DNA of 64,000 nt from Phyllobates terribilis (Eukaryota), in the NCBI RefSeq assembly GCF_046119375.1, contig NW_027362762.1, forward strand, positions 380,184,001 to 380,248,000. The letters run 5' to 3'. The position numbers and the translations under genes are program-made. The first letter of the stretch is position 1; the number at the start of each line of letters is the position of its first letter. The notes under the pieces are model-generated. The model did not search any database. It saw only the letters and a program-made list of their open reading frames with translations, and was not told the DNA's origin. Positions 1,834-64,000 of this stretch are shown one piece after another.

Positions 1834-1837
1834 ACTT

Positions 1838-1856
1838 TGGCGTAGTCGGCAGGATT
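1838..1856 (+). other. Primer-binding site complementary to tRNA-Ser (AGA/TGA-type 3' end)
   Basis: TGGCGTAGTCGGCAGGATT is the reverse complement of ...AATCCTGCCGACTACG+CCA and lies 4 nt after the LTR. Confidence 0.9.
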
Positions 1857-3254: not shown

Positions 3255-3288
3255 AGGGCCAACCCCCAGGAAAAAGATCACCAGGCCC
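3230..3288 (+). promoter_or_regulatory. -1 programmed ribosomal frameshift signal (slippery T TTA AAC plus H-type pseudoknot)
   Basis: Heptamer 3230-3236 is in gag phase; 8-nt spacer; stem 1 CCTGGGG/CCCCAGG (3245-51/3264-70); stem 2 GGGCC/GGCCC (3256-60/3284-88); pol is in the -1 frame. Confidence 0.85.
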
Positions 3289-6200
3289 ATCGAACTGGCG
3301 CGACAGATATGTGGGAGGACGTCCAGTCTTGCCTGTGGTACTGGATGGCATTCCCATGAGTGCCCTACTGGACACCGGGTCACAGGTCACCACCATCCCG
3401 TACGTGCTCTTTAAGCAGTACTGGAATGACTCGGATATTACCCGCTACCCTGACGACGACTTGAGTATCATCGCCAGCAATGGCCAGCCCGTGCCACAGA
3501 TCGGATTTAAAGAGGTGACCATCAAAATCGGTAGAGTCGAACTGGCAGCACAGGGACTGATCATTGTAGATATTGACAAGCATGAGAGTCACCCAAAAAT
3601 AACTCTAGGAACTAATGTAATTGAAAATTGTCTTGCAGAGGTGATTTTCCTTTTACAGCAGGTTGCCAAGAACGCCAGCTCCGGCGAGCAGCGGGTGCTC
3701 CAGAAAGAGATCCGGGCACTGATGCGACGGCAACAGGTGGAACTCTCCGGCGGTGAGATTGGTAGCGTAAGAATGTGTGACCCTTTTCCTATTGCCATGC
3801 CCCCAAAAAGTGAAATGATGATTTGGTGCCGGGCAGCTATTGGTCTGAGAGGTAGAGATTACCAGGCAATGGTAGAACCAGTTTACTCGGACAGTAGGCC
3901 CACCATTTTGACAGCACGGGGGGTGGTTGATGTACGCCATGGGAGGGTGCCCGTTCGCATAATAAATATCGGGGAGAGGGAAGTGTACCTGCCCCGGTAT
4001 GCCACGCTAGCCAAATTATATACCATTAACCAAAATTCTATACAATCTGTGGAACCCTTGCCTCCATCTCACCCGGAGGAAGGTAACGGCTCTAAGAAAA
4101 ACATGGAGGACTGGTGTCAGCAACTACATCTGGGTACTGACTCCACTCCCGCACACCAGAAACAAGGAGTCTATCGGGTGGTTCAGGAGTACGAGAGAGT
4201 GTTCAGTAAACACCCGTTAGACTTCGGGCGAGTCAAGGGGGTAGAACACCACATCCCCACGGGAGACCATCCTCCTATAAAAGAGAGGTATCGACCCGTA
4301 CCCCCTGCCCACTACCAACACGCCAAGGGGATGCTTAGAGACATGAAGGAGGCTGGGGTGATCAGGGATAGCTGTAGCCCCTGGGCAGCTCCACTAGTCT
4401 TAGTCCGAAAGAAAGACAACACCATGAGGATGTGTGCAGATTACCGGAAAATCAATCGTATCACACACAAGGATGCGTACCCCTTACCAAGGATAGAGGA
4501 GTCATTGGCTGCTTTAAGATCTGCTAACTTCTTCTCTACCTTGGATCTCACTAGCGGGTACTGGCAGCTTCCTGTAGCAGAGGCGGACCGGGAGAAGACC
4601 GCATTCACCACCCCGATGGGACTTAGCGAGTTCACCTGCATGCCGTTCGGACTCTGCAACGCACCAGGAACCTTCCAACGACTAATGGAGTGTTGTCTGG
4701 GCCACAGAAACTTCGAGACGGTCCTGTTGTACCTGGACGATGTCATCGTATATTCCAAGACGTATGAGGACCACCTGAAACACCTGGCGGAAGTGTTCGA
4801 GGCTCTGGCGAGTTACGGCCTAAAGGTGAAACCCTCCAAGTGTCACCTCCTGAAACCAAAGGTGCAGTACCTGGGACACGTGGTGAGCGCTGACGGAGTG
4901 GCTCCCGACCCTGATAAGATCACCGCAATTAAGGAATGGCCAAGCCCCTCCAGCGTAAAAGAAGTGCGGCAGTTCCTCGGGTTGGTAGGCTACTACCGAA
5001 GGTTTATTCCCGGTTTCACCAAAAAGGCAGCACCTATGCAGGACCTCCTGATAGGCCAGTCCCGGAAGGCCAAGAACCAGAAGCCGCCCTTCAAATGGGA
5101 GGAGCTGGAAGAAGAGTCCTTCCGCCAGTTGAAGATGGCCCTCACGGGGGACGAAATCCTGGCGTACCCGGATTATAGCCAGCCCTTTATCCTCTACACC
5201 GACGCCAGTAACATCGGGCTAGGAGCCGTACTGTCCCAGATCCAGCAGGGGAAGGAACGAGTAATCGCCTACGCCAGCCGAAAACTGCGACCCACCGAAA
5301 GGAACCCCGAGAATTACAGCTCATTTAAGTTAGAGTTCCTGGCCGTAGTATGGGCAGTCACCGAGCGCTTTAAGCATTACCTCGCTTCTTCCCGGTTCAC
5401 CGTGTACACGGATAACAACCCGTTGACACACCTGGACACGGCAAGACTCGGTGCCCTGGAGCAGAGGTGGATGGCCCGTCTGTCCAACTACGAGTTCACA
5501 ATCAAATACCGGGCAGGACGCTCCAATACCAACGCGGACGCCCTGTCCAGGATGCCCAACCTGCCGGACGGAGGAGAAGATCCGGAGGGACTGGAAGAAG
5601 TTGAACTCCCTGCGTTCCACCGTCATGGGACTATCCAGTATTCCCACCGGGTAAGGAGTAAGCAGGCTGCTACGTTGAACCCCTTACCCCACTACAACTG
5701 GGCGGAAATGCAAGACAGCGACCCTGCCGTCCGACTGGTGAAGGAGATGCTGACTCGGCCGGAGGCTCGCCTTGAACCAGACGCTCCGGAGGAAGCCAAA
5801 CAACTATGGGCAGAGAAGAGTCGACTGTTCCTTTACAAAGGGAAGTTGTGCCGCAGAATGGTTAACTCCCGGACGCATGAATTACTCTGGCAAGTAGTGG
5901 TGCCACGAAGAGACGCAGCCATGGTGATGGAGGCATACCACGACGGAGCTGGACACTTCGGGTGGAAGAAGCTGGAGTTCCTGCTGCGCGAGCGGTTCCA
6001 CTGGGTAGGCATGAGGGGAACCATCGAGAAGTGGTGCAGAGACTGTGGCCCGTGCAACCTGAGGAGGAAGGACCGTGCCAGCCAGAAGACTCCCCTGCAG
6101 TCCATCGTCACCCGGCAACCGTTGGAACTGGTAGCCTTGGATCATGTAAAACTGACCCCAAGCAGAAGTGGCTACGTCTACGCGTTAACCATCGTGGATC

Positions 6201-7366
6201 ATTACTCCCGGTTTCTGGTTGTCGTCCCCGTCAAGGACTTAACGGCTCAAACAGCAGCTAGAGCCTTCCAGCAGCACTTTTGCCGTCCACACGGGTACCC
6301 GGACCAAGTGCTGACGGACCAGGGACCTGCCTTTGAAGCGGAGGTCTTCCAGGAATTCTGCAATCTGTATGGCTGCCGGAAGATAAGGACGACACCCTAC
6401 CATCCGCAAACTAATGGACTTTGTGATAAAATGAACCAGGTGGTAATGGATCTTCTAAAAACGTTGCCCCTGGAAGAACGCAGTCTGTGGCCTGAGAAGT
6501 TGCCCGATCTGGTGGACCTATACAACCACATCCCGGTAGGTTCCACCAACTGTACCCCGGCTTACCTAATGAGGGCAAGACCTGGTAAGTTACCTGTTGA
6601 CCTGGAAATGGGAGTCCTGACACCCGAGGACACTTCACCAGAAACAGACTGGGACACAGAGAGGCAGCAGCAGTACCGGAGAGTACAGGAGAGCGTGGAG
6701 CGAAGTCTCTGTCAGGCTAGGGAAAGACAAGAGAAAACTTACAACCAGCATGCTCCCGCTGTTCCCCTGGTACCCGGAGAGCAGGTCTTGAAGAGGAAGA
6801 GACGGCTCCACAAGTTGGATGACCAGTGGGAGAAGGACCCGTACACCGTACTGCCCTCAAGCCACGAGAACCCGAAGGTTTGTACCATCAGTAAAGACGG
6901 AGGGGAAACCACAGCCATTGTATCCCGGGACCACCTGAAGAAGTGTCCCGAACAACTGAGGAACCCTGAAGAGGAACAAGAAGACCATCGACCCGTAGAG
7001 GAAAGGGAAGATATGGTTAGTACTGTGCTTGGGGACTTCCCTCGGTCTTGGACTCAGGTCAATGGTGCAGTTGTGGTACCCGTACTCACCTTCCTCCAAC
7101 CAGCATCCCAAGCACCTACGGAGCAACAGGTAGAGCTGGAAGAACAGCCGGTCCAGGAGGCAGAAGACTCCACACAAGCAGAACAGGAGGATCAACCCTC
7201 TGCTTATAGTGAGCCTGCCGTACCCCTAGTGAGACAAAGAGCCGGTAGACAGCTGCCCAGTTTACCCTTGACAGCTCCTACACCCTGTAGTTCAGGGCTA
7301 GACAGTCAGCTCCGTAGGTCCACTAGGGCCACTAGAGGCCAGTTACCCGCACGCTGGAGGATTTGA
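3230..7366 (+). CDS. pol: Pol polyprotein (protease, RT, RNase H, integrase) expressed by -1 frameshift
   Basis: LLDTGS (PR), YLDD (RT), LYTDAS (RH), HDGAGH...CRDCGPC zinc finger plus DDE core (IN); no stops over more than 1350 codons. Confidence 0.96.
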   Translation, partial: FKRAQPGVEGQPPGKRSPGPSNWRDRYVGGRPVLPVVLDGIPMSALLDTGSQVTTIPYVLFKQYWNDSDITRYPDDDLSIIASNGQPVPQIGFKEVTIKIGRVELAAQGLIIVDIDKHESHPKITLGTNVIENCLAEVIFLLQQVAKNASSGEQRVLQKEIRALMRRQQVELSGGEIGSVRMCDPFPIAMPPKSEMMIWCRAAIGLRGRDYQAMVEPVYSDSRPTILTARGVVDVRHGRVPVRIINIGEREVYLPRYATLAKLYTINQNSIQSVEPLPPSHPEEGNGSKKNMEDWCQQLHLGTDSTPAHQKQGVYRVVQEYERVFSKHPLDFGRVKGVEHHIPTGDHPPIKERYRPVPPAHYQHAKGMLRDMKEAGVIRDSCSPWAAPLVLVRKKDNTMRMCADYRKINRITHKDAYPLPRIEESLAALRSANFFSTLDLTSGYWQLPVAEADREKTAFTTPMGLSEFTCMPFGLCNAPGTFQRLMECCLGHRNFETVLLYLDDVIVYSKTYEDHLKHLAEVFEALASYGLKVKPSKCHLLKPKVQYLGHVVSADGVAPDPDKITAIKEWPSPSSVKEVRQFLGLVGYYRRFIPGFTKKAAPMQDLLIGQSRKAKNQKPPFKWEELEEESFRQLKMALTGDEILAYPDYSQPFILYTDASNIGLGAVLSQIQQGKERVIAYASRKLRPTERNPENYSSFKLEFLAVVWAVTERFKHYLASSRFTVYTDNNPLTHLDTARLGALEQRWMARLSNYEFTIKYRAGRSNTNADALSRMPNLPDGGEDPEGLEEVELPAFHRHGTIQYSHRVRSKQAATLNPLPHYNWAEMQDSDPAVRLVKEMLTRPEARLEPDAPEEAKQLWAEKSRLFLYKGKLCRRMVNSRTHELLWQVVVPRRDAAMVMEAYHDGAGHFGWKKLEFLLRERFHWVGMRGTIEKWCRDCGPCNLRRKDRASQKTPLQSIVTRQPLELVALDHVKLTPSRSGYVYALTIVDHYSRFLVVVPVKDLTAQTAARAFQQHFCRPHGYPDQVLTDQGPAFEAEVFQEFCNLYGCRKIRTTPYHPQTNGLCDKMNQVVMDLLKTLPLEERSLWPEKLPDLVDLYNHIPVGSTNCTPAYLMRARPGKLPVDLEMGVLTPEDTSPETDWDTERQQQYRRVQESVERSLCQARERQEKTYNQHAPAVPLVPGEQVLKRKRRLHKLDDQWEKDPYTVLPSSHENPKVCTISKDGGETTAIVSRDHLKKCPEQLRNPEEEQEDHRPVEEREDMVSTVLGDFPRSWTQVNGAVVVPVLTFLQPASQAPTEQQVELEEQPVQEAEDSTQAEQEDQPSAYSEPAVPLVRQRAGRQLPSLPLTAPTPCSSGLDSQLRRSTRATRGQLPARWRI

Positions 7367-20865: not shown

Positions 20866-22515
20866 CAGTTGTATGAAAAAGTTTGGGCACCCCTATTAAT
20901 CTTAAGCTTAATGTTTTATAAAAATTGGTGTTTTTGCAACAGCTATTTCAGTTTGATATATGTAATAACTGTTGGACACAGTAATGTTTCTGCCTTGAAA
21001 TGAGGTTTATTGTACTAACAGAAAATGTGCAATCTGCATTCAAACAAAATTTGACAGTTGCATAAGTATGGGCACCTCACCAGAAAAGTGACATTAATAT
21101 TTAGTAGATCCTCCTTTTGCAAAAATAACAGCCTCTAGTCGCTTCCTGTAGCTTTTAATGATTTCCTGGATCCTGGATGAAGGTATTTTTGACCATTCCT
21201 CTTTACAAAACAATTCCAGTTCAGTTAAGTTTGATGGTCGCCGAGCATGGACAGCCCTCTTCAAATGATCCCACAGATGTTCAATGATATTCAGGTCTGG
21301 GGACTGGGATGGCCATTCCAGAACATTGTAATTGTTCCTCTGCATGAATGCCTGAGTAGATTTGGAGCGGTGTTTTGGATCATTGTCTTGCTCAAAGATC
21401 CATCCCCTGCGTAACTTCAACTTTGTCACTGATTCTTGAACATTATTGTCAAGAATCTGCTGATACTGAGTGGAATCCATGCGTCCCTCAACTTTAACAA
21501 GATTCCCGGTGCCGGCATTGGCCGCGCAGCCCCAAAGCATGATGGAACCTCCACCAAATTTTACTGTGGGTAGCAAGTGTTTTTCTTGGAATGCTGTGTT
21601 TTTTTGCCGCCATGCATAACGCCTTTTTGTATGACCAAACAACTCAATCTTGGTTTCATCAGTCCACAGGACCTTCTTCCAAAAACAAATTGGCTTCTCC
21701 AAATGTGCTTTTGCATACCTCAGCCGACTCTGTTTGTGGCGTGCTTGCAGAAACTGATTTTTTCGCATCACTCTCCCATACAGCTTCTCCTTGTGCAAAG
21801 TGCGTTGTATAGTTGACCGATGCACAGTGACACCATCTGCAGCAAGTTGATGCTGCAACTCTCTGGAGGTGGTCTGAGGATTGTCCTTGACTGATCTCAC
21901 CATTCTTCTTCTCTGCTTTTCTGATGTTTTTCTTGGCCTGCCACTTCTGGCCTTAACAAGAACTGTCCCTGTGTTCTTCCATTTCCTTACTATGTTCTTC
22001 ACAGTGGAAACTGACAGGTTAAATCTCTGAGACAGCTTTTTGTATCCTTCCCCTGAACAACTATGTTGAATAATCTTTGTTTTCAGATCATTTAACAGTT
22101 GTTTTGAGGAGCCCATGATGCCACTCTTCAGAGGAGATTCAAACAGGAGAACAACTTGCAAGTGGCCACTTTAAGTAGCTTTTCTCATGATTGCATACAC
22201 CTGGCTATGAAGTTCAAAGCTGAATGAGGTTACAAAACAAAAAAAAGTGCATTAGTAAGTCAGTAAAAAGTAGGTAGGAGTATTTAAAACAAGAAAATGA
22301 TAAGGGTGCCCATACTTATGCACCTGTCAAATTTTGTTTGAATGCAGATTGCACATTTTCTGTTAGTACAATAAACCTCATTTCAAGGCAGAAACATTAC
22401 TGTGTCCAACAGTTATTACATATATCAAACTGAAATAGCTGTTGCAAAAACACCAATTTTTATAAAACATTAAGTTTAAGATTAATAGGGGTGCCCAAAC
22501 TTTTTCATATAACTG
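20866..22515 (-). mobile_element. Complete Tc1 element (1650 bp, IR/DR type)
   Basis: TA TSD on both sides; 211-bp TIRs (20866-21076 and 22305-22515) with 3 mismatches; each TIR has an outer and an inner ...GGGCACC direct repeat. Confidence 0.95.
21094..22116 (-). CDS. Intact DD34E Tc1 transposase (340 aa from MGSSKQ)
   Basis: Paired-like HTH with SGRPRK; WTDETK, QDNDPKH and SPDLNIIE with D-34-E spacing; no stops. Confidence 0.93.
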   Translation of the reverse strand: MGSSKQLLNDLKTKIIQHSCSGEGYKKLSQRFNLSVSTVKNIVRKWKNTGTVLVKARSGRPRKTSEKQRRRMVRSVKDNPQTTSRELQHQLAADGVTVHRSTIQRTLHKEKLYGRVMRKNQFLQARHKQSRLRYAKAHLEKPICFWKKVLWTDETKIELFGHTKRRYAWRQKNTAFQEKHLLPTVKFGGGSIMLWGCAANAGTGNLVKVEGRMDSTQYQQILDNNVQESVTKLKLRRGWIFEQDNDPKHRSKSTQAFMQRNNYNVLEWPSQSPDLNIIEHLWDHLKRAVHARRPSNLTELELFCKEEWSKIPSSRIQEIIKSYRKRLEAVIFAKGGSTKY

Positions 22516-35411: not shown

Positions 35412-36332
35412 CAGTACAGACCAAAAGTTTGGACACACCTTCTCATTTAAAGATTTTTCTGTATTTTCATGACTATGAAAATTGTACATTCACACTAAAG
35501 GCATCAAAACTATGAATTAACACGTGGAATTATATACTTAACAAAAAAGTGTGAAACAATTGAAAATATGTCTTATATTCTAGGTTCTTCAAAGTAGACA
35601 CCTTTTGCTTTGATGACTGCTTTGCACACTCTTGGAATTCTCTTGATGAGCTTCAAGAGGTAGTCACCAGAAATGGTCTTCCAACAATCTTGAAGGAGTT
35701 CCCAGAGATGCTTAGCACTTGTTGGCCCTTTTGCCTTCACTCTGCGGTCCAGCTCACCCCAAACCATCTCGATTGGGTTCAGGTCTGGTGACTGTGAAGG
35801 CCAGGTCATCTGGTGTAGCACCCCATCACTCACCTTTTTGGTCAAATAGCCCTTACAGAGACTGGAGGTGTGTTTGGGGTCATTGTCCTGTTTAAAAATA
35901 AATGATGGTCCAACTAAACGCAAACCGGATGGAATAGCATGCCGCTGCAAGATGCTGTGGTAGCCATGCTGGTTCAATATGCATTCAATTTTGAATAAAT
36001 CTCCAACCGTGTCACCAGCAAAGCACCCCCACACCATCACACCTCCGCCTCCATGCTTCACGGTGGGAATCAGGCATGTAGAGTCCATTCGTTCACCTTT
36101 TCTGCGTCGCCCAATGACACGGTGTTTGGAACCAAAGATCTCAAATTTGGACTCATCAGACCAAAGCACAGATTTACACTGGTCTATTGTCCATTCATTG
36201 TGTTCTTTAGACCAAACAAGTGTCTTCTGCTTGTTGCCTGTCCTTAGCAGTGGTTTCCTAGCAGCTATTTTACCATGAAGGCCTGCTGCACAAAGTCTCC
36301 TCTTAACAGTTGTTGTAGAGATGTGTCTGCTG
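35412..36332 (-). mobile_element. 5'-truncated Tc1 (same family as 56219-57837)
   Basis: TA|CAGTACAGACCAAAAG TIR; ORF 35573..36343 with SDE, QDNDPKH and SPDLNPIE; fused to a Gypsy LTR stub. Confidence 0.9.
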
Positions 36333-39300
36333 GGGTGCCACATTCCCCCCTAGTTAAATTCAGTACTGAGGGCTGAGGACACCTTTTAGAGTTAAACAAT
36401 TAACAGCAATAACAATTCACATTATCAAAAATCAAGAATTTACAAAGTCTCAAACAGGCAAAAATCACAAAAACCCAACAAAAATTAGTAGCAGTCATTG
36501 CGACGCTTAGTCTTTATGCTGCTATCCGGGAATTGTCTTTTTCCGGGCACTTGAAGGTTGGTTGGTGGGAACCAACTCAACCCACTTCGTGTATCGTCCC
36601 TGGGCGTGGCTTCAGGGCACTCTGTCGGTGGGCCTGGTTTTCGGCCACGTCTGTGCTTTATTTTCAAGGCCAACAATTAACTTTATTCAACATTGTCCAG
36701 ACCACATCTAGTCATGTGGTCCATTTGTCCATAAATATAGTAACTATATACACTCACGATTGCTTAAAAGTTCTTACAGGAAGTCTCTGTAGGCTCTCAT
36801 ACTTAACAGTTGCAACTATAGACTATACACTATTATCTTATTACACCTTAGTCTCTATAATTGGCAGGGAGCTGACCTCTGGTACTACGGGTCGATCTAC
36901 GCAGTACAGTTGTTGCCAATGACCTACCCGGTTCTCTAGTGTCTACCGCTGGTGTGGTGGGCTCAGTGTGGACTACACTACGGTTAGTCTGAGGTAACAC
37001 CGGTAGGCTTGGTAGTCTTCTACGACTTCTTTGACTCACCATGGGTATGACAGATTCACCCCTATCAGGGGGTAGATTCTCCTGATCCGCTGCTGATGAC
37101 GCATCTGTTTCTGGGGCCGACTGGTCTCTCTGCTGTTCTAGAGTCTCTGCGGCTTCCGGTGAGGCTACTTGGGGAAAGGTCAGGACAGATACCACGATTG
37201 CTTGGTTCACCTGCGTCCAAGACCGGGGAAATTCTCCAAGGATGGTCTGAACAGTCCCTTCCACCCTTTCTGGGGGCTGTTTTGGTCTTCCTCTTTGTGT
37301 CTCAATTGATCAGGGCATATCTTCAGGTGGTCTCTTGAGACTGCCGCTGAAGTCTCTCCTCCATCTTTACTGATGAGGAATACCTTGGTGTTGTCGAAAT
37401 TTGAAGGTTAGACGGTGTATGGCTCAACCTCCCACTGATCATCTAATTTGTGAACTCGTCTCTTCCTTTTGAGTACCTGTTCTCCAGGTGATAAGGGAAC
37501 TGCAGGTGCGTGCTGATTATAAGTTCTCTCCTGCCTCTGTCTCGCCTGGGACAAACTTCTCTCTACACATTCTTGCACCTTGCAGCTCCGTATCCCAATC
37601 TGCACCTGGTGATGTCATCTCAGGTGTTAAAACTCCCATGTCTAAGTCAATGGGTAACTTGCCAGGTCTTGCCCTCATCAGGTAGGCAGGTGTACAGTTG
37701 GTGGAGTTCACCGGGATGTGGTTATATAGGTCCACCAAATACAGTAATTTCTCTGGACACAGGCTACGTTCTTCAAGGGGCAACGTCTTCAACAGGTCTA
37801 TTACCACCAGGTTCATTTATTCGCACAACCCGTTGGTCTGGGGATGATACGACGTCGTTCTTATTTTCTTGCAGCTGTACAAGTTACAGAATTCTTGAAA
37901 CACTTCTGCTTCAAAGGCTGGGCCTTGGTCGGTAAGCACTCATTCAGGGTGACCGTGCGGGCGACAAAAGTGTTGCTGAAACGCTTTGGCTGCCGTCTTA
38001 GCCGTCTGATCCTTCACTGGCACTACTACCAGGAATCGGGAGTAGTGGTCTACTATGGTGAGAGCGTAGACATTGCCTGACCGTCTTGGGGCTAGCTTCA
38101 CATGGTCCAAGGCTACCAGTTCAAGTGGTTGTTTGGTGATTATGGGCTGCAGGGGAGCCCTCTGGCTATCACGGTCTTTCCGTCTCAGGTCGCATGGACC
38201 ATATTCTCGACACCATCTCTCGATAGCTTTCCTCATGCCAACCCAGTAGAATCGCTCACGTAGCATGACTTCCAACTTCTTCCACCCAAAGTGTCATGCT
38301 CCATCGTGGTACGCCTCTAAGACTATTGGCGCATCCCGCTTCAGGACTATCACCTGCCAGACCAGTTCGTGTGTCCGGGAGTTGATGCTTCTCCGACACA
38401 GCTTTCCCTCATAGATGAACAGCTTGCCCTTCTCCTTCCACAACTGTTGGGTCTCCTGTGGAGCATCTGGACCAGGGTGCGAGTCAGCTTATGTCAGCAA
38501 CTCCTTTACTAGGTGGACAGCCGGGTCGCTATTCCGCGTTTCTGCCCATCCATGGTGGGGCAATGGGTTAAACGTGGCCTCTCTGTTGGCAGAGCGCTTG
38601 TCCCTCATACAGTGGGAGCACTGGGTCACCCCGTGATGATGGAAAGCCGGTAGCTCTATCTCCTCCAGCTCTTCCGGGTCTTCTCCCCCATCTGGCAAGT
38701 TGGGCATCCTGGACAGCGCATCAGCATTAGTGTTTCTATGCCCCGCCTGATACTTGATGGTAAACTCGTAGCTGGACAGCTGGGTCATTCATCGCTGCTC
38801 CAGCGCACCTAGCTTCGCCGTTTCAAGGTGGGTCAGCGGATTATTGTCTGCGAAAATTGTAAATTTCGCTGAAGCCAGGTAGTGTTTGAAGCGCTCTGTT
38901 ACAGCCCAGACTATGGCTAAAAACTCCAACTTAAAGGAACTATAGTTGTCGGGGTTCCTTTCCGTGGGATGGAGCTTCCAGCTGGCATAGGCAATTACTC
39001 TCTCTCTGCCCTGCTGTACCTGGGACAGCACCGCTCCCAATCCCACGTTGCTGGCATCCATATAGAGTATAAAGGGTTGGCCATAGTCGGGGTAGGCCAG
39101 GACTTCGTCTCCCATAAGAGCCACTTTCAGTCAAGTGAAGGATTCTTCTTCTTTTTTACCCCACTCGAACTGAGGATTCGGGTTCTTGGCCTTCTTGGAC
39201 TGGCCCACTAAGAGGTCCTGCATGGGTGCCGCTATCTTTGTGAAACCCTTGATGAATCTCCTGTAGTAGCCTACCAGCCCAAGGAACTGCTGCACTTCCT

Positions 39301-42300
39301 TGAGAGTGGAGGGTCTTGGCCAAACCTTGATCACGGTGACTTTTTCAGGGACTGGTGCTACACCTTAGGCGCTTACCACATGACCTGGGTACTGCACCTT
39401 GGGCTTCAACAGGTGGCACTTGAACGGCTTTACTTTCAGGCCAAAACCAGATAGGGCTTCGAACACCTCGGCCAGGTGCTCCAGGTGGTCTTCGCATGTC
39501 TTTGAGTAGATGATTACGTTGTCTAGGTACAGCAAAACGGTTTCGAAGTTTTTGTGTCCTAGGCAACACTCCATTAACCCCTGGAATGTTCCCAGGGCGT
39601 TGCAGAGCCCGAATGGCATGCAGTTGAACTCACAGAGGCCCATTGGTGTCGTAAACGCGGTCTTCTCTCTGTCCGACTCTGCCACGGGAGCCTGCCAATA
39701 CCCAATGGTGAGATCCAAAGTGGAGAAATAGCGGATCTTAGTGCAGCTAATGATTCCTCAATTCTGGGTAATGGGTAGGCGTCCTTATGTGTAATGCGGT
39801 TAATCTGCCTATAATCAACACACATCCTCATTGTACCGTCTTTCTTTCTAACAAGCTGGGGGTACGGGCCGGTACTGCTCTTTAATGGGTGGATGATCTC
39901 TTGTGGGGATATGATGTTGGACCCCTTTTACCTGCCTAAAGTCTAGTGGGTGTTTGCTAAAGACTCGCTCATATTCTTGGACCACCCGGTACACCCTATG
40001 CTTTTGGTGCAAAGGGGTGGAGTCGGTGCCTACTTGTAGCTTCTGACACCAATCCTCCACCTGCCCCTTGGGGCCATTGTCTTCCGCCTGTTCGGACGGA
40101 GGCAAGAGTTCCACTGCCTTTATTGCGTTGTTACTGACAGTGAACAGCTTAGCAAGGGTGGCATACCGGGGTAAATGGACCTCTTTCTCCCCACAATTCA
40201 GGATGCGTATCGGTACTCTCCCCTTGAGGACATCGACCACCCCACTGGCCGTCAATATGGTGGGCCTACAATCAAAGTACACGGGTTCTACCAGGGCCTG
40301 ATAATATTGACCCCTGAGACCTATTGCTGCTCGACACCATATTAAAATTTCACTCCTAGGGGGCACTGCAATGGGGAATGGATCACTCACTCTGACACTG
40401 CCAACTTCTCCACCAGACAGCTCTACCTGTTGTCTCTGCATCAGGGCTTTGATCTCCTTCTGCAGAACGCGCTGCTGACTAGAACTGGCAGTCTCTGCGA
40501 CCTTTTGCAACAAAACAATAATTTCCCAAAGACAATCCTCTATCACATTGGTGCCTAAGGTTATCATAGGATGACTTTCTCGGAGATCAATATCTACAAT
40601 AATCAACCCTTGTGATAGCAATTCTACTCGGCCAACCTTTATGGTCACCTCTTTATACCCCACCTGAGGCAAGGGCTGACCATTGCTGGCAAAGATGTTA
40701 ATATGTTCATCTGGACTGCGGGTAATGTCTGAATCAGTCCAGTATTGTTTAAAAAGGATACATGGCATCTTTGTCACCTGGGAACCAGTGTCCAGTAATG
40801 CGTTCATCAGGATGCCATCATGCACGACAGGTAGAACCGGTCGTCCTCCCACGTACTTGTCTCGTCAGCTTTGTGGGCCTGGTCGTCTTACTTCTGGGGG
40901 TTGGCCCTCTGCCCCAGGGGTTGCTTGTTAAAATCGCAGAATCTTGCGAGGTGCCCTGCCTTTTGACAGCGGCGGCAGATGGGTTGTCCATTCTGGTCGT
41001 AGCGATCGCTGTTTCTCCCTCTGGTCGGTGGAATTCTTCTCTGCCGTCGCCACGGGACGTCATCTGGACTGGAAGCCACTGAATTCTTTCCTTTGGAGAC
41101 ATTTGCATGGCCTGCACGGTTTTGGCTAGTGTAGCCACACTTTTGGTCAAATCCTGGACCTGAAGGTGTAGGTCTGCAGAGGGGTCATTATCTAGGGCCT
41201 GCGGGTCAGCCTCCACAAGTGCCAGGGAAAAGGACGCCGCCTCCTGATGGTATGTGATAGCTGGGCGCCGGAGGGGTGCAGTGCCACTTGGGGTTGATTC
41301 TCGCAGCACCCGGATGGCCCGGTCTTTAAATTGCGCAAAGTCTAGATCAGGGTTTTGCAGAGCCATAATGTGTAGCTGTGTCCGGTGAGCGTTAGACAGG
41401 AGCCCCTCGATAAACTGTTCGGTTAGCAATCTGTCCTCGTCTCGCACACTGTCGGGGTCTACCTGTTTAATGGCCCGCAGCGCCTCCTGCAGGTTTAGAG
41501 CATAGTCCCTTACACTGTCCTGCACCCTTTGTTTGCTCCCGTAGAACTTCATTTTAATCTCTGCTGCTGTGCAAGTGTCAAAGGTATCTTTCAACCTGGC
41601 CAGAATTTGCTTAACAGTGCTTTTGTTCCTGCCCGGCCAGGACTTCCCTCTGGGCTTCACCGATTAGCTGGCCTATGAGGATGCTGACTTTTTGCTCCTC
41701 AGACAGGGGGTACACTTGGAACAAACTGCGCAGTCTCTCCTCAAATTCGCTCAGGGTGTGCGACTCCCCTGAGTACTGGGGCAACCATGCCGTCCCTGGA
41801 ATATACGACATGGATAAAGGCATTACAGTGGCGGCGGCCGCGCCGCAGCTGGATGCTCTTTCAGGTTGGGCATCTTCCTCCCCCCCAGTGAACCTCAGCC
41901 AGGTCCTGGGTTTCTGCTGGCGTACCAGTATGCTGTTCTGCAGGCGAGAGGGATCGCTTACCCGGTGGTTCCGGATCGGGGCCTCCTGCTTCCCCTACGC
42001 TAATGTCAAATCACAAGATTATACAGCTCAGTAAAGTCTATGGCACACAGTACCCAGTTATACCGGGCTTCGAATCCTGTTCGTGATGCCAAGTTGACGC
42101 GCCTCCTGGCGCCGTGGGGTACTCGGTAGCCCGGCCGGTTCTTTTCTGGGGTAGTCACGGTGGCAGTGACCCGGTCCGTGGCCCTGTGCGGTCAAATGAA
42201 GAAAAAGTAAAAGTGAATTTTGGGGAATGTATTCGTGACGCCACCCGTGGAATGCGGCTATATGGGGCCGCCGCTGCGGTGCAGATCCACTGGAGCTGAT

Positions 42301-56218: not shown

Positions 56219-57837
56219 CAGTACAGACCAAAAGTTTGGACACACCTTCTCATTTAACGATTTTTCTGTATTTTCATGACTATGAAAATTGTACATTCAC
56301 ACTGAAGGCATCAAAACTATGAATTAACACATGTGGAATTATATACTTAACAAAAAGGTGTGAAACAACTGAAAATATGTCTTATGTTCTAGGTTCTTCA
56401 AAGTAGCCACCTTATGCTTTGATGACTGCTTTGCACACTCTTGGCATTCTCTTGATGAGCTTCAAGAGGTAGTCACCGGAAATGGTTTTCACTTCACAGG
56501 TGTGCCCTGTCAGGTTTAATAAGTGGGATTTCTTGCCTTATAAATGGAGTTGGGACCATCAGTTGTGTTGTGTAGAAGTCTGGGGGATACACAGCTGATA
56601 GTCCTACTGAATAGACTGTTAGAATTTGTATTATGGCAAGAAAAAAGCAGCTAAGTAAAGAAAAACGAGTGGCCATCATTACTTTAAGAAATAAAGGTCA
56701 GTCAGTGCGAAAAATTGGGAAAACTTTGAAAGTGTCCCCAAGTGCAGTTGCAAAAGCCAACAAGCGCTACAAAGAAACTGGCTCACATGAGGACCGCCCC
56801 AGGAAAGGAAGACCAAGAGTCACCTCTGCTTCTGAGGATAAGTTTATCCGAGTCACTAGCCTCAGAAATCGCAGGTTAACTGCAGCTCAGATTAGAGACC
56901 ACGTCAATGCCACACAGAGTTCTAGCAGCAGACACATCTCTTCAACAACTGTTAAGAGGAGACTTTGTGCAGCAGGCCTTCATGGTAAAATAGCTGCTAG
57001 GAAACCACTGCTAAGGATAGGCAACAAGCAGAAGACACTTGTTTGGGCTAAAGAACACAAGGAATGGACATTAGACCAGTGGAAATCTGTGCTTTGGTCT
57101 GATGAGTCCAAATTTGAGATCTTTGGTTCCAACCACTGTGTCTTTGTGCGACGCAGAAAAGGTGAAGGGATGGACTCTACATGCCTGGTTCCCACCATGA
57201 AGCATGGAGGAGGAGGTGTGATGGTGTGGGGGTGCTTTGCTGGTGACACTGTTGGGGATTTATTCAAAATTGAAGGCATACTGAACCAGCATGGCTGCCA
57301 CAGCATCTTGCAGCAGCATGCTATTCCATCCGGTTTGCGTTTAGTTGGACCATCATTTATTTTTCAACAGGACAATGACCCCAAACACACCTCCAGGCTG
57401 TGTAAGGGCTATTTGACCAAGAAGGAGAGTGATGGGGTGCTATGCCAGATAACCTGGCCTCCACAGTCACCAGACCTGAACCCAATGGGGTGAGCTGGAC
57501 CACAGAGTGAAGGCAAAAGGGCCAACAAGTGCTAAGCATCTCTGGGAACTCCTTCAAGATTGTTGGAAGACCATTTCCGGTGACTACCTCTTGAAGCTGA
57601 TCAAGAGAATGCCAAGAGTGTGCAAAGCAGTCATCAAAGCAAAAGGTGGCTACTTTGAAGAACCTAGAATATAAGACATATTTTCAGTTGTTTCACACTT
57701 TTTTGTTAAGTATATAATTCCACATGTGTTAATTCATAGTTTTGATGCCTTCAGTGTGAATGTACAATTTTCATAGTCATGAAAATACAGAAAAATCTTT
57801 AAATGAGAAGGTGTGTCCAAACTTTTGGTCTGTACTG
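56219..57837 (+). mobile_element. Full-length Tc1 (1619 bp) with a truncated transposase (ORF 56633-57493)
   Basis: Long TIRs CAGTACAGACCAAAAG; right TA flank, left TT; an 11-bp deletion after 57486 removes the catalytic E. Confidence 0.92.
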
Positions 57838-58159: not shown

Positions 58160-59480
58160 ACCCCTTAGTGACCAAGCCAATTTTTGAAATCTGAACAATG
58201 TCACTCTGGAATGCTTCAACATATTCCAGTCATTTACGTAGTGCCCGAAGTCTTGAGCCTGTGCAGTGGAATTGGAGAGCTGTGCAGGCGTGCCTCACTG
58301 TGCCCTATTAAACAGCCAGTGATTCCACTGCGCAGGTGCAAGACTTCCAGGACTACGTGAATGTTGAAGAGACGTCATCCCTTTATATGCAGTTAGGAGT
58401 GGCAGCATTTGAAGGGTCCGAGGCGGTGCTGATCACAATATGGAAACACCCATAAAACCGGACCACGCAATTTACATGCAGCGGGGACAAGTATAAAACA
58501 CTCTTTATGAGGTATGCAGGGGCACGTCTGAGGATATCAGTATTCTCATTCTTATGACCTTAAAGGTGATGGGCATAGTTTGTAAGCTAAAAAACTGGTG
58601 TCAGTTTCCCTTTAATTTCTGGAATACAAATTTGGACACTATTGCATTTGCAGAACCCCTCAGATGCCAAAGAAGCAGAAGCAGCCTCGAGTGACTCCAT
58701 TTGGCAAACATAACCCCATAATGAATTCATCTACTGCTGTGGCAAGCAATTTTAAACCACAAACTACATCACAGAATGTTATAAGATTGGGCCATGAAAA
58801 CAAAGAATTTTTTTGTTCTGGTTTTTCTGCTAAAATTTTACTTTAGCCTCATTGTTTTAATTCATACAAGGGGTAATAAGAGAAAATGGACAGGACAATT
58901 TGTTATGCAATTTTTTCCAAACGTGGGAGTACCCTACATGTTGTTGTATACTACTGTTTTAGCACATGGCAGGGATCAGAGGGGAAGGAGCGCTACAGAT
59001 TCAGTTTAAATAGATTGTGGGCTCCATTAGCTGAGCCCCTGAGGTGCCAGAGCAGCAAACAACCCCACAAGTGACTCCTTATTGGAAACTTTACTCCATA
59101 AGGATTAGGGGTGTAGTGAGTATTGTGAACCCACAGGTGCTTCATAGAATTTTATAACATTGGAACATGAAAACATAGCATTTTAATGGTAAAAGTGTAA
59201 TTCTTATATTAGATGCAGATTTGTCAGTTACACAAGGGTTAAAAGGTGAAACCCAACCCCACAATTTATTGCACAATTTCTCCCGAACGCGGTGATGCCC
59301 CATATGTCGTCAGAAATTACTGTTAGGCCACACGTCAGGGCTGAGAAGGAAGGAGCGCTTGCTAGAATAGTTTGCGGGCAACATTTGCGGAGCCCCTAAA
59401 GTGCCGGAACAGCAGAAAAAAACCAAAGTGACCCCATTGTAGAAATTAAACCTCTTAATGAATTCATCTACGACTACAGT
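58160..59480. mobile_element. Decayed non-autonomous piggyBac-like sequence
   Basis: Starts TAAACCCCTTAGTGACC; internal sub-repeats (ACCCCACAAGTGAC, AGCCCC) resemble frog TTAA elements; right end not defined. Confidence 0.4.
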
Positions 59481-59561
59481 GACTATTTTGTAACATCCAA
59501 GTCACACTTTATTCTGGAGAATCGCAAATATGCCAGTTTAGTGCCTGTACATTGTGCCCCC

Positions 59562-60356
59562 TGTAAGGCAGCGCTAGTCATCATGCTGGGGAACACTCGC
59601 TGCACCGTGTCAATTAAAGCACACCAGCCACGTTTTCCAGTATTTCCCAATCCAGCAGTTTATTACACTTCATAACTGCTTATAACATAGTCCGTCTCAG
59701 TGGCTCACCGGCATGTTTACACACATAACATCCAAGAGCCTTTCAAGTGGCAGACAGGCCCACTTGGCTCCAGTTACAGCCTTCAGCAAAGTAACTATAT
59801 CAATGTCCATATAACGCACCGCTTTTACCTTTTGCCGGGTCTAGCGGTTTCCATCAGATTTGTTCTGCCACAGCTGTGGCTTTACGGCTTCCCAGATGGG
59901 GGTCTCCAGCCCTCGTACCTTCCAAGGCTGCTGGCATCTCTTACACACACAGAGATCCAGCCTCTTCCTTTCAGGACTCTTGTCTTCCAAGCCTCTTGCC
60001 CTCCAAGGCTACTGGCATCTCTTACACACAAGGATCCAGCCTCTGCCTTTCAGGCGTCACCAGGCTTCCCCAGGCCTCTCTAGGCCTCACTAAGCCTCTC
60101 CAGGCTAACGGTGTCCCACACACAGGGAACAGGCCTCACGCCTTTCACACACTGTTTCAAAAGCACCAGGATTTATATATCCTTCAGTGCACACAGGACC
60201 TGTAACGATGTCACAGTCATGTGATCAGTCCTTCAGTGCACACAGGACCTGTAATGATGTCACAGTCATATGATCAGTCCTTCTGAGGGAGAGGTACATG
60301 GTCAGCCAGAACACACCCTGGACCATTACAGTAATGCCGCAAGCCGCTGAATTACA
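59562..60356 (-). repeat. 3' LTR (795 bp)
   Basis: Minus strand begins TGTAAT after GAGGGGGGGATA and ends CCTTACA; minus-strand AATAAA near 59660. Confidence 0.9.
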
Positions 60357-60536
60357 TATCCCCCCCTCTGTTCAAACTTGTGGGGTTGAACACATAATAT
60401 ACCCGATCACATTATAACCCACAGTTCACACAGAGACCATGTACTTGATAATTGCGCTGCTCAGCCCCTGGAACCTTAGTCATCGACATTAGCCCGTTCC
60501 TTAGGGACCTACCATCTGTCATTGTCATTGACTTCG

Positions 60537-61497
60537 TCAAGTCACATTTCCGGGTCGTAACCTTGTCAGACCTTCCCCGCTCCCAGCGTCAGCCGTAACC
60601 TTGTCAGACCTCCCCCGCTCCCAGCGGTCAGTCGTAACCTTGTCAGACCTCCCCTGCTCCCAGCGGTCAATACAGCAGTGTGACTCACATGCCCTGGTAT
60701 CTAAGGTCCGGTTCGACTCCGTACTGTCCCATACTCTATTGGGTCGTTTGTATGGGCCACTCAGACCTGAGTTACTGGAGGTCTCACTACCTCTAAACCC
60801 ACGCCTACTATCCTCAGGACATCTTGGAAAGTCTCTAACTTCTACTGTAGCCGTTCTATTATTTGAAGGGCCCTTTCTCTGTCTGGTCTCACAATTTCTA
60901 GACGGCTGCCATCTTCTGCTGCTCAGGCGATTCTGTCTTTCCACTCGCAGTCTAGTGAGAGTCAACTGTTCTACCTCTCGCAGGTAGGTCACTCGGTACT
61001 CCATGAGCATGCGTATATATGCAAGACTTTCTTCCGTTCCTACAGCGGAGAATGACACCATGCCGTCTTCATCTGATATCCAGTCCTGTCGATCACGTGG
61101 ACTCCTTACTTTCACCACACCAGACTTCTTTACCATCATCTGCATGGCTCGGCCATTTCTCCCAATGAGCTTTCTTACCAGAGCATGAGGCACCCGGATG
61201 ACCTCTTCACGCAGACTTTGAGCTTTTCTCATAAGCTCCAGTTGTCTAATGGCTTGTTCCGTCTTCAACCGGACAAACCGCTTTGTGCGAATACATCGTC
61301 AGTGCATGTCACTTAGGATAGCCACCCTCTTCACTGTGACTTCAGTTGTGGACAGGACCAACAGCTGTTTAGCTTCTGAGGTTGAGTACACCTTACAGGC
61401 TCCCATGGCCTTCTTAAACTCTTCATGCACGGACTCACTGGTGCATTCTCCTCTCAAATCCTCGGGTACATCTATGAGGCACTTGTACCGACATGTT
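60537..61497 (-). pseudogene. FXR1: Retro-captured FXR1-derived coding segment (KH0, KH2, NES, part of the C-terminus; KH1 absent)
   Basis: YKCLIDVPEDLRGEC...HEEFKKAMGAC...QLLVLSTTEVTVKRVAILSDMH*RCIRTK and VPHALVRKLIGRNGRAMQMMVKKSGVVKVR...EDGMVSF..VGTEES..YLREVEQL...DSTESNRTLDTRACESH align by eye to FXR1; stops at 61299-61301 and 61497-61499. Confidence 0.9.
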
Positions 61498-61688
61498 TAT
61501 GTCTCACCAGTGGTTTCCAGACGATCAACCGGCTCAGGTTTCAGGGACAACTGACTTTCAGCTTCTTCACCCTGTATGCTTCCCCTGAGCTGACTCACAG
61601 CTACAAATTCAAGAATTCTGTCTTGACCATTTCTATTTCATACTTATCTTCTGTTAACACTCTCTTAGCTCTCCTCAGGTCCACCTTC

Positions 61689-63470
61689 TCATGGTATAAA
61701 GGAGTAAGTGCAACTTGTTTGCCCTTTTCCTTCTCCAAGGAGGCCTCGCTCAGCTACTCGCCTCTCAGCAGCCCATCTCTGAAGCTCTTCCTGCTTCAAC
61801 TGCTCCTTTAACAGCAGAATTCTCTCAGACCTCTCTGTCTCCAATGCGCCCACTTGGCTCTCAACAGCCAGTCTCTCAAGCTTCTCTTGCTTCAAATGGG
61901 CTTGTAGCGTCTCCTTGAGCTCCTTGATCTTGGCTCTTACATCCATCGAATCATCCGAGCTCGCATTATTCGAGTAGGTATTTGTTTCATACCTCCCATC
62001 TCCAGTGGCCAACTCCTGACCCTGGTCTGTGGCTTCTCCGATAGACTCCTCCATCTTTTTCCGCTCAGCTTCCATCTTGCTGATTCTTTCCTTAAGGCAC
62101 GTCTCTGCCCTCTGGAGATTATCACAGAACGTCTGCAGCTCCTTCACTTGAGCTTCCAGTCCCGGGATCTTTCTGCGGAGATCATCATTCTCATCATGGG
62201 TGTCCTGCAGAGTGGTCTCAATCACTTGGCGCATGTGCTCTGCATCCGCCTTATCATCCTCTAGTTTTTCTTTAACCATGAGGAGATCCTCATAGTCTCT
62301 CTTAATTTGTTGCAGTTCCCCACTGAGTTCACCATACTCCTTCTTGGATTCACACCGCTCTTTCTTCACTTGGTACAGCTCTAACTGTACCAGGGTGAGA
62401 CGATCTTTCACCTCGCACAACTCATCTTCACACTCCGCTTTGTCAATCTCCAATTGAAAAACCTCCTCCTTGGTTTTGCGGCGGTCCTCCTTAATTTCCT
62501 GGAACATTTCCTTCCATTGGTTAACTTCCTCGTTGCTTCCCTCCAGTTCTCGCTGTAAGTTCCTCACAACCTGGTATATTTTCTGCCGTTCAGACTCCAG
62601 GCTCCGCTGGTCTGAGGACACGTTCTCCAGGTTTTCCCATAGTTGCTGCACGTCACTCTGACACTGCTGCCTGATAGGCTCCAGCTCTTGGTCATGACTG
62701 GCCAACTCCTCTTTCAGGGCTGTCAGATCCTTCTGTCTCAGTACGGTACCGGAGGTTGCTACTGGCAACGTCACCTCCTCTTCTGCCTCTAAAGGAGGAT
62801 CCACACTTGGAACAGAGGCACACAGCATTACATTTTCTTTATTTTCACTTTCAGCAAAGACTACAGGAGCAACTTTTTTGTGGCCCTTGCGCCATCGACG
62901 ACGAGAGGGGGACTTTCTCACCTCATCTAGCTCGTCCTGACTGAACTCTCTTTCTACTTTCATAGTGTCACCGTCAGTTGTGGGGTCTGTGTCACTCCCC
63001 ATGGTGTCGTGGACCAACAAGTCACCTCCCACCTTGACGTCAACCCCTTCTACTGGAGCTACCCCGTTATCAATGGTCAAATTGTCATTTTTAGGCCGTA
63101 CCAACCCACAACCAGTAACAAATTTTGGTTTTCTATACTCCATGCTCTTTTGAAAATCCGCCCCCTTTTTAGACTCCGCCCCCTTTCGGACAACCACACC
63201 TATAGGAGGATTTTTACAAAAAAAATCAGTAATAGTCTTAGGACCCAGTTCACAACATCTCTTACCACCTCCCCGGGCACTCTGGGACAATACTGGCGCC
63301 CCCGGAGAGTTGACAGAATGGTCCACTGCCGCCATTCTATACGGTGCCAACCGCTCCTGCCGTTCCTGCACCATGTCCTGTAGACGTTTCTCAAATACCT
63401 GCTGCGGTTTTAACCGGCACTTTAATCGCTCAATAGCTCCAGTCTCATTTGCTGCTCCGTTCACAGCCAT
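61689..63470 (-). CDS. 593-aa ORF with a long E/K/Q/L-rich coiled coil; probably frameshifted near 61740 and originally running on toward the FXR1 segment
   Basis: Open frame in the gag position after the PBS; heptad-rich region from about residue 255; no CCHC or capsid motif recognised; an alternative frame continues LEKEKGKQVALTPLYHEKVDLRRAKR. Confidence 0.7.
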   Translation of the reverse strand: MAVNGAANETGAIERLKCRLKPQQVFEKRLQDMVQERQERLAPYRMAAVDHSVNSPGAPVLSQSARGGGKRCCELGPKTITDFFCKNPPIGVVVRKGAESKKGADFQKSMEYRKPKFVTGCGLVRPKNDNLTIDNGVAPVEGVDVKVGGDLLVHDTMGSDTDPTTDGDTMKVEREFSQDELDEVRKSPSRRRWRKGHKKVAPVVFAESENKENVMLCASVPSVDPPLEAEEEVTLPVATSGTVLRQKDLTALKEELASHDQELEPIRQQCQSDVQQLWENLENVSSDQRSLESERQKIYQVVRNLQRELEGSNEEVNQWKEMFQEIKEDRRKTKEEVFQLEIDKAECEDELCEVKDRLTLVQLELYQVKKERCESKKEYGELSGELQQIKRDYEDLLMVKEKLEDDKADAEHMRQVIETTLQDTHDENDDLRRKIPGLEAQVKELQTFCDNLQRAETCLKERISKMEAERKKMEESIGEATDQGQELATGDGRYETNTYSNNASSDDSMDVRAKIKELKETLQAHLKQEKLERLAVESQVGALETERSERILLLKEQLKQEELQRWAAERRVAERGLLGEGKGQTSCTYSFIP

Positions 63471-63667
63471 CGCGGTACACTGTTCACACTAGACACTTCA
63501 CACCGCTCTCCCCGGAAATTTTCGTAGCCTCGCCAAGCCACAGCAAACCAGGTTTGAGTGCGAGGACAATTTTTGTAACCCCGCCGAGTTACAGCCAGAT
63601 GCTTTAATCTTCGTGACCCCGCCGAGCCACACCAAGATGCTTGCATCCACACTCATCATCCTATGCC

Positions 63668-63746
63668 GTTACCCCTAGCAACCAGGCTGCAGTTGCCCCT
63701 AGCAACCAGGCTGCAGTTGCCCCTAGCAACCAGGCTGCAGTTGCCC
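63668..63746. promoter_or_regulatory. Three tandem 24-bp repeats, each containing an RFX X-box-like motif
   Basis: GTT(A/G)CCCCTAGCAAC at 63668, 63692 and 63716. Confidence 0.6.
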
Positions 63747-63760
63747 GCATTCTCCAACCA
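63742..63760 (-). other. PBS complementary to tRNA-Ala(AGC), with one extra base
   Basis: Plus strand TGCCCGCATTCTCCA-A-CCA versus recalled tRNA-Ala 3' end ...TGCCCGCATTCTCCA+CCA; 2 nt from the LTR. Confidence 0.8.
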
Positions 63761-63762
63761 CA

Positions 63763-64000
63763 TGTAAGGCAGCGCTAGTCATCATGCTGGGGAACACTCG
63801 CTGCACCGGGTCAATTAAAGCACACCAGCCACGTTTTCCAGTATTTCCCAATCCAGCAGTTTATTACACTTCATAACTGCTTATAACATAGTCCGTCTCA
63901 GTGGCTCACCGGCATGTTTACACACATAACTTCCAAGAGCCTTTCAAGTGGCAGACAGGCCCACTTGGCTCCAGTTACAGCCTTCAGCAAAGTAACTATA
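63763..64000 (-). repeat. 5' LTR (partial, window edge)
   Basis: Direct repeat of 59562-59799. Confidence 0.93.

Follow-up and report, generated by a model that had tools for sequence, protein, structure and literature searches.

A pol-less LTR retroelement family of poison frogs with an FXR1-derived RNA-binding module in its only gene

A stretch of 64,000 nucleotides from the genome of the poison frog Phyllobates terribilis (assembly GCF_046119375.1, contig NW_027362762.1, positions 380,184,001 to 380,248,000; hereafter the window) ends in a long terminal repeat (LTR) retroelement. An original prediction, made from the letters of the DNA, described this element as having replaced pol with a captured RNA-binding module of FXR1. 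The locus raises the question of what an element lacking the enzymes for its own copying would do with part of a host RNA-binding protein, and of when and how that part was acquired. On balance we favour the answer that the element belongs to a non-autonomous LTR family of dendrobatoid frogs, that FXR1 was captured once and long ago, and that the chimeric, host-derived protein serves the element's own RNA.

Anatomy of the element

The element lies on the minus strand at positions 59562–64000 and its 5' LTR is cut off by the end of the window. Direct-repeat LTR copies begin at 59562 and 63763 and differ at 2 of 238 comparable nucleotides (99.2% identity), a figure that rests on the last 238 bp of the 5' LTR (63763–64000), all of it that the window holds. 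The 3' LTR (59562–60356, 795 bp) is complete and bounded by TG...CA. Read on the minus strand it starts TGTAATTCAGCG and ends CGCTGCCTTACA; its inverted ends are imperfect, with termini TGTAA...TTACA. It contains a candidate TATA element (TATATA, 60174–60179) and an AATAAA (59659–59664), both on the minus strand. The polypurine tract (PPT), AGAGGGGGGGA, is read on the same strand at 60359–60369 and is followed by TAT (3 bases) and then by the TG of the LTR at 60356.

At the opposite end, a leader of 292 nucleotides (63471–63762, minus strand) holds three 24-nt tandem units (63664–63746) and a primer binding site (PBS), TGGTTGGAGAATGCGGGC, at 63743–63760 (minus strand), two bases past the 5' LTR. 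This sequence occurs once in the window and matches the 3' end of tRNA-Ala at 17 of 18 positions. Reverse-complemented it reads GCCCGCATTCTCCAACCA, which is identical to the 3' fragment of mammalian tRNA-Ala-AGC, GCCCGCATTCTCCACCA, except for one extra A; the fragment used for the comparison is printed in PMC10878346. A scan of the window for a tRNA gene with which to compare the PBS directly gave none. In a few family contigs (5 of those in the DNA sequencing run X1, a minority) one base is missing at 63756, where its loss could turn the PBS into a perfect tRNA-Ala match.

The interior consists of an open reading frame (ORF) of 593 amino acids (63470–61689) followed, in the same direction, by FXR-like sequence. 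A word search with this ORF returned P0001, a 998-residue 'uncharacterized protein' of P. terribilis with an FMRP KH0 domain. Its gene is intact and lies on a 932-Mb chromosome other than that of the window; the gene range of 2,997 nt equals the ORF length, and the gene is therefore intronless. In a tblastn comparison, P0001 aligns to the window as one colinear alignment (63470–60582) plus a tail in a different frame (60588–60460). Because the 3,406-nt interior is thus colinear from end to end with P0001, it leaves no room for pol. By Pfam, neither the interior nor P0001 has a match to reverse transcriptase (RT), RNase H or integrase. The architecture predicted at the outset, with two LTRs, a PPT and a PBS and none of these enzymes, is thereby upheld. 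No further copies or related LTRs were found by blastn elsewhere in the window.

The FXR1-derived module

The module occupies 60678–61523 (minus strand), is intronless, and is assigned to FXR1 by Pfam, PDB profile matches, alignment and tree. Kinship with the FXR family had been predicted and is borne out, with all word-search matches of this part falling on FXR1 and a position in the tree inside vertebrate FXR1, apart from FXR2 and FMR1; the tree, with two FXR2 sequences and one FMR1 sequence in it, speaks against either of the latter as the source. The module is about 45% identical to frog host FXR1.

The KH0 domain (61245–61487, minus strand) matches the Pfam family KH_9 (PF17904) with E = 6e-13 at 61299–61457 in the window and with E = 1.1e-25 in P0001, where it also matches the FMRP structure 4qvz (E = 2.9e-21). 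A linker helix then joins KH0 to KH2 (61005–61205, minus strand), which matches the crystal structure of FMR1 KH1-KH2 (2qnd; E = 3.5e-16), aligned to its KH2 half, and whose GxxG loop reads IGRNGR. The C-core follows at 60750–60989 (minus strand) with the DSTES..ESH motif. IGRNGR, LREVEQL and DSTESNRTLDT..ESH are all found in the window copy, the second as originally noted, and the FXR1-like character proposed for the last agrees with the alignment of DSTESNRTLDT to DNTESDQTADT of FXR1 (DNTESDQTADTDASE; E = 0.001). Three tandem 39-nt units (60550–60665, minus strand; DRWE.GRSDKVT), found in a repeat search, derive from the FXR1 tail region.

The prediction had the homology run from KH0 through KH2. 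Both of these domains are present, KH2 with its GxxG loop, but KH1 is missing from all Dendrobatidae element copies, which have a 60-column gap in its place. Neither the window copy nor P0001 contains tandem Tudor/Agenet domains according to Pfam. In a less diverged relative from Anomaloglossus the tail aligns to FXR1 residues 422–569 (E = 5e-14). Judged by these alignments, the piece originally captured spanned residue ~120 to at least residue ~570 of FXR1, from the end of the Agenet region into the C-terminal tail.

Distribution and history of the capture

Searched exhaustively and without a profile, the FXR part of P0001 matched 227 proteins, the ten best of which all come from dendrobatoid frogs. 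One of the ten, P0037, is the host FXR1 of Ranitomeya; the remaining nine are of the element type and belong to Ranitomeya imitator, R. variabilis, Dendrobates tinctorius and Anomaloglossus baeobatrachus. The family appears confined to the dendrobatoid (poison) frogs. As had been supposed, the FXR segment is no one-off. It is present in P0007 and in P0001, the paralogue on another chromosome; loci in P. terribilis lie on at least five chromosomes, at least 14 loci are annotated in D. tinctorius, each on a contig of its own, several more come from two Ranitomeya species, and no part of the family has deeper coverage than this segment (see below).

The element proteins of Ranitomeya and Dendrobates have 367–999 amino acids and carry the FXR part at or near the C-terminal end. 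Since this part matches in a single stretch, these proteins lack KH1. The longer models (700–999 amino acids) also have the backbone N-terminus described below. Intact intronless ORFs of 700–999 amino acids occur in four species of three dendrobatid genera, and the Anomaloglossus models are shorter and FXR1-like. The C-terminal ends of P0039, P0041, P0044 and P0188 (Ranitomeya and Dendrobates) contain ...VQPHKFEQRGG..., which is the PPT region of the window in translation; the FXR module therefore stands just upstream of the PPT across genera.

Gene range equals ORF length in P0001, P0044 and P0188, the three D. tinctorius loci whose coordinates were checked are intronless, and the alignment of the window copy has no intron-sized gaps. 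In host FXR1 the source region is divided among many exons. Intronless continuity across this region fits the capture of a spliced mRNA.

We placed the modules in an IQ-TREE maximum-likelihood tree of 26 rows and 237 columns that includes one FMR1 and two FXR2 sequences. All element modules form a single clade (support 100/98), which falls within vertebrate FXR1 (98/95) and has as its sister P0037, the dendrobatid host FXR1 of Ranitomeya (99/96). The window copy pairs with P0001 (100/100). Within the clade Anomaloglossus branches first, followed by Phyllobates versus Ranitomeya plus Dendrobates, which is also the order of the host genera. Because there is one element clade inside FXR1 and its branching follows the hosts, the tree indicates a single old capture, which would have preceded the split of Aromobatidae and Dendrobatidae and been followed by vertical descent. 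We take its age to be tens of millions of years, assuming the usual timetrees. With an intronless module, many loci and one clade within FXR1, the proposal that a mobile LTR family captured a spliced FXR1 mRNA stands. In length, the branches of the element modules exceed that of host FXR1 about a hundredfold (path of ~1.2 versus 0.01 changes per column).

Anomaloglossus copies keep KH1 but have lost its GxxG loop, with VRSLR or LRALR in place of IGTHG. KH1 thus seems to have lost its GxxG loop first and to have been deleted afterwards in Dendrobatidae. We also considered that KH1 was absent from the source mRNA as a splice form; this was rejected, as the Anomaloglossus copies still have the domain.

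Cingulin, LONP1 and backbone segments

Upstream of the FXR1 module the gene is composed of further host pieces set on a backbone N-terminus. The N-terminal backbone region (62751–63470, minus strand) starts with the ATG at 63470 and has motifs (DTD..D.D and SSRRRR) in common with Ranitomeya and Dendrobates proteins. The N-terminal 235 residues of P0001 have no outside homologue in a word search, Atlas or Pfam, and alignment gives only a motif-level likeness to the Ranitomeya/Dendrobates backbone. Next comes a coiled coil derived from the rod of cingulin (62007–62750, minus strand; P0001 residues 242–476), similar to Bufo CGN ~568–946 with internal deletions (E = 4e-39). Only a fragment of the rod is represented, without head or tail. 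It is followed by a backbone coiled coil (61694–62006, minus strand; ..AAERRVAE..) common to Ranitomeya and Dendrobates proteins, whose N-terminal parts have in common with P0001 the coiled coil ..AE(R/H)RVDELEKEVSELRGHL... A LONP1-derived fragment of 43 residues (61566–61693, minus strand), similar to human LONP1 475–517, then leads to the FXR1 module; it matches the Lon protease in the PDB with E = 1.1e-12 in the better-preserved copy P0007 and with E = 2e-3 in P0001. The gene ends in an element-specific C-terminal tail (60460–60588, minus strand; P0001 956–998, 86% identity), which in the window copy is in frame -2 and not in the FXR frame.

By these alignments the gene is a mosaic of three host genes, cingulin, LONP1 and mainly FXR1. 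The original prediction spoke of a coiled-coil ORF ahead of the FXR sequence; such an ORF exists, but it is largely cingulin-derived and the LONP1 fragment stands between the coiled coil and FXR1.

The element proteins of Ranitomeya and Dendrobates lack both the cingulin and the LONP1 piece, which were therefore probably added later, in the lineage of Phyllobates. The cingulin part of the Phyllobates subfamilies P0004–P0006 is 69–71% identical to Bufo CGN, the same closeness as that of the host CGN of Eleutherodactylus to Bufo CGN (70%), and this fits a later capture; in the subfamily of P0001 and the window copy identity is down to 40%.

Three minor observations concern this region. In the RNA-labelled run X13, a 2,243-nt contig matches only 62005–62237 (15 mismatches in 233 nucleotides), with unlike sequence on one side, and could represent host cingulin mRNA or another subfamily. 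In runs X9 and X10, small libraries of two other organisms, 62364–62915 is 10- to 100-fold deeper than the remaining element (up to 46,000); this excess may come from transcripts of host cingulin or from separate amplification of a fragment. P0002, a 'cingulin-like' protein of P. terribilis, continues after its cingulin part with about 65 C-terminal residues that read ...NIKADALSH... and that by eye resemble the end of RNase H in a Ty3/gypsy pol, either from a nested insertion or in a family member joined to pol.

Damage to the window copy

The prediction spoke of ~270 codons that align with FXR1. This needs correcting: the gene of the window copy is interrupted by stops, frameshifts and a deletion. 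An in-frame stop at 61497–61499 (minus strand; GET*) is private to this copy, since all contigs aligned there in run X1 carry the base of the Glu codon (61499 A>C, depth 13336/13336). A second in-frame stop, the TGA at 61299–61301 (minus strand), replaces a Trp of P0001 (SDMH*RC versus SDMHWRC). A deletion and frameshift at about 61750 closes the 593-residue ORF at 61689, and loose contig ends and joints in run X1 reveal extra sequence in other copies at 61748–61752. At least two frameshifts lie around 61615–61750, and the LONP1 fragment (61566–61693) is frameshifted internally. An additional 39-nt repeat unit throws the copy out of frame near 60588. With two stops, frameshifts, a deletion and an extra 39-nt unit relative to P0001, the window copy is dead.

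Copy number and transcription

In run X1, 17,855 contigs match the 5.5-kb stretch examined at ≥90% identity and 3,866 at ≥99%. Summed word depth over the element ranges from 2e4 to 1.4e5 and reaches its maximum in the KH0 region (61260–61443; 137,844), compared with 130–275 over the flank at 58500–58867, where individual contigs have a depth of 3–4. Summed depth is not a copy number, and we take it only to mean that the element is repeated thousands-fold. The family is highly repeated, its FXR part included. Near-identical words also occur in runs labelled as two other organisms. In the RNA-labelled run X13, 709 contigs fall on the element and 0 on the single-copy flank, and the element is likely to be transcribed.

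A possible role for the protein

Because the family lacks RT, RNase H and integrase, copying by the enzymes of another element is needed. In the reading that we favour, an autonomous helper element would supply RT and integrase, and the fusion protein would multimerise through its coiled coils and bind RNA through KH0, KH2 and its basic tail. It might in this way coat or escort the element's own transcript, substituting for Gag/nucleocapsid or acting like LINE-1 ORF1p. The retained linker helix between KH0 and KH2 might further let the protein join host FXR/FMRP granules. Both the mobilisation in trans and the role of the protein are what we infer from the gene. The likeness to LINE-1 ORF1p is an analogy: both have a coiled coil, an RNA-binding domain and a basic tail, and there is no homology between them.

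Several features of the module are consistent with constraint on the protein. Columns that are invariant among host FXR1, FXR2 and FMR1 are better conserved among the element modules than the others (0.78 versus 0.63; Mann-Whitney p = 4e-7), and the host residue is the element majority at 74 of the 95 host-invariant columns. The GxxG loop of KH2 is kept in nearly all copies, with G123 invariant and G126 nearly so. An AlphaFold model of the module has a mean predicted local distance difference test score (pLDDT) of 83, with values >90 over most of residues 11–210, and Foldseek superimposes it on FMRP KH0 (4ova/4qvz) with a root-mean-square deviation of 1.4 Å and matches it to FMRP KH1-KH2 with E = 5e-9. 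The ORFs are open and intronless in three dendrobatid genera despite divergence of their FXR modules to 40–47% identity.

A number of points weigh against this reading, the last of them concerning pol. The argument for selection on the ORF draws on its intactness and the pattern of conservation, and points to constraint in that measure. Despite the 99.2% identity of its LTRs, the window copy has five breaks in its ORF; this damage exceeds that predicted by ~0.4% divergence and suggests mobilisation of broken copies in trans, with no need for the protein in cis. The LTR identity, taken over 238 nt, may overstate the youth of the copy, LTR gene conversion being possible. The Anomaloglossus members were compared as proteins and are putative members of the LTR family. 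The RNA signal in run X13 could, given the copy number, stem from DNA carry-over or from read-through. As to the helper, no autonomous partner was found, and no similarity at the nucleotide level links the FXR element to the Ty3/gypsy element that the window also contains. That element (1968–7366, plus strand) is apparently intact and autonomous. It encodes a 428-residue Gag with a PNMA-like capsid and a CCHC knuckle, which has no similarity to the backbone N-terminus of the FXR element, and a 1,351-residue Pol that begins with the protease motif LLDTGS and contains RT, RNase H and the zinc-binding and core domains of integrase.

Retropepsin-like motifs (LVDSGG / LLDPGS ... VIIGRD) lie upstream of the FXR part in P0040 and P0210, and it is a plausible reading that FXR1 took the place of pol downstream of a protease. 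This putative remnant is non-significant in Pfam up to E 10 and in a PDB profile search; an AlphaFold model of the protease-like segment has a pLDDT of 47.6 and only non-significant matches to the protease of Mason-Pfizer monkey virus (E 0.14–1). Comparison with the Pol of the window's Ty3/gypsy element by hhalign gave only a 21-residue active-site match (probability 9%). As a separate observation, P0210 and P0120 of D. tinctorius have two tandem protease-like segments and N-terminal runs of a QKGVESQKGAVTQIG repeat, which is faintly echoed in P0001 as KKGAESKKGADF.

The ORF might instead be passenger cargo with no role for element or host, carried along in a pol-less element that is copied in trans, so that intact ORFs simply mark recent bursts. 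Near-identical LTRs around a badly broken ORF are what this explanation would lead one to see, and annotated gene models are ascertained for being open. It accounts poorly for ORFs of 700–999 residues that are intact in three dendrobatid genera although their FXR modules have diverged to 40–47% identity, and for a conservation that tracks the structural core of the host FXR proteins and retains the KH folds and the GxxG loop. We hold it to be unlikely, though it deserves to be taken seriously.

An explanation to which we give a little less credence makes the module a mimic or antagonist that uses the linker helix to enter or poison the FXR1/FXR2/FMRP complexes of the host. The element's RNA would then be relieved of translational repression or of sequestration in granules, and the protein would be a counter-defence and not a structural protein. 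The KH0–KH2 region is reported to mediate the mutual binding of FMR1/FXR proteins, a finding attributed to Siomi et al. 1996. In the element this region is kept and is predicted as a confident long helix. In mouse germ cells, RNA granules with L1 ORF1p also contain FXR1, FXR2 and the cold-shock protein YBX1 (PMC10289378). The module is, on the other hand, only ~45% identical to host FXR1, so that heteromerisation with the host proteins is uncertain, and we regard this explanation as improbable.

It is very unlikely that one or a few intact loci are domesticated genes serving the host, for example in germline RNA control or the restriction of transposable elements, with the LTR copies as dead by-products. 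NCBI does annotate intact single-exon genes in several species, but loci are numerous in each genome and spread over many chromosomes or contigs, the family has a very high copy number, and several models have an ORF that continues into PPT and LTR. A one-off FXR1 retrocopy that landed in an LTR element at this locus can be rejected with near certainty, as the same junctions recur in P0001, P0007 and other genera and the FXR part is the deepest-covered in the family.

The favoured reading, a non-autonomous family whose chimeric protein serves its own RNA, has a bolder form in which the lineage rebuilt a structural, RNA-packaging protein from host parts, with coiled coils supplied by the backbone and cingulin and the KH domains and tail by FXR1. 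Selection would have maintained this protein over tens of millions of years, while the lineage amplified to thousands of copies in the giant genomes of poison frogs. We consider this version possible but doubtful.

Comparison with known elements

LTR elements with captured host genes have been described among oncogenic retroviruses, a few endogenous retroviruses (ERVs) and in plants, and these captures are rare, of low copy number or short-lived. The process in the frog family is that of retroviral transduction. Acutely transforming retroviruses of the gag-onc type resemble the frog family in that a spliced host mRNA is fused to remnants of a polyprotein, pol is lost and a helper is needed. 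The frog family, in contrast, is germline, endogenous, present in very high copy number and lasting across a superfamily, and its cargo is an RNA-binding module within a serial three-gene mosaic rather than a growth-signalling gene. LARD and TRIM elements likewise have LTRs, a PBS and a PPT without RT or integrase and are mobilised in trans, but their interiors are usually non-coding whereas the frog family keeps one long ORF. The maize element Bs1 and other plant LTR retrotransposons are said to be pol-less, with an ORF that is chimeric from several host gene fragments; unlike the frog family they reportedly have a low copy number and no RNA-binding cargo.

Crocodilian ERVs have captured KIT-ligand and nectin3 mRNAs, the latter represented by six insertions (PMC4299795). 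As in the frog family, the captured piece is a host mRNA, taken up before speciation, whose ORFs have stayed intact and show evidence of constraint. These ERVs exist in few copies and carry a whole ligand or receptor; the frog family has a domain fragment in its only ORF, has been massively amplified and has had fragments added later. We take them to be the closest vertebrate precedent, and maize Bs1 to be the closest structural one. Relative to host FXR1, the module shares KH0, the linker helix, KH2 with its GxxG loop, the C-core and the tail motifs, and differs in lacking Tudor/Agenet and KH1, in being intronless and in lying between LTRs.

In the literature searched we found no description of this family and nothing comparable in vertebrates. 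Its distinguishing features are domain-level fusion into the only ORF, a serial mosaic of three genes, persistence throughout a superfamily and very high copy number. It offers an abundant vertebrate element whose only gene contains a host RNA-binding module and later gained further host fragments, and it resides in poison-frog genomes whose gigantism is unexplained. The family is a natural experiment on what a pol-less element must encode, on how KH domains evolve once free of host function, and on whether FXR/FMRP RNA granules are exploited by retroelements or put out of action by them.

Other features of the window

The DNA beside the 3' LTR (58645–59561) is repetitive, with a ~90-nt unit present three times at 66–71% identity, and the depth of run X1 over it climbs from ~200 to 3,000–17,000. 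The element seems to be nested inside another repeat. Two adjacent long ORFs of 334 and 280 amino acids (39848–40852 and 40818–41660, minus strand) have no Pfam match. Tc1/mariner (Sleeping-Beauty-like) transposase ORFs occur at 21094–22161 and 35573–36343 on the minus strand and at 56633–57493 on the plus strand, and the first of these seems complete, with its helix-turn-helix and DDE_3 domains.

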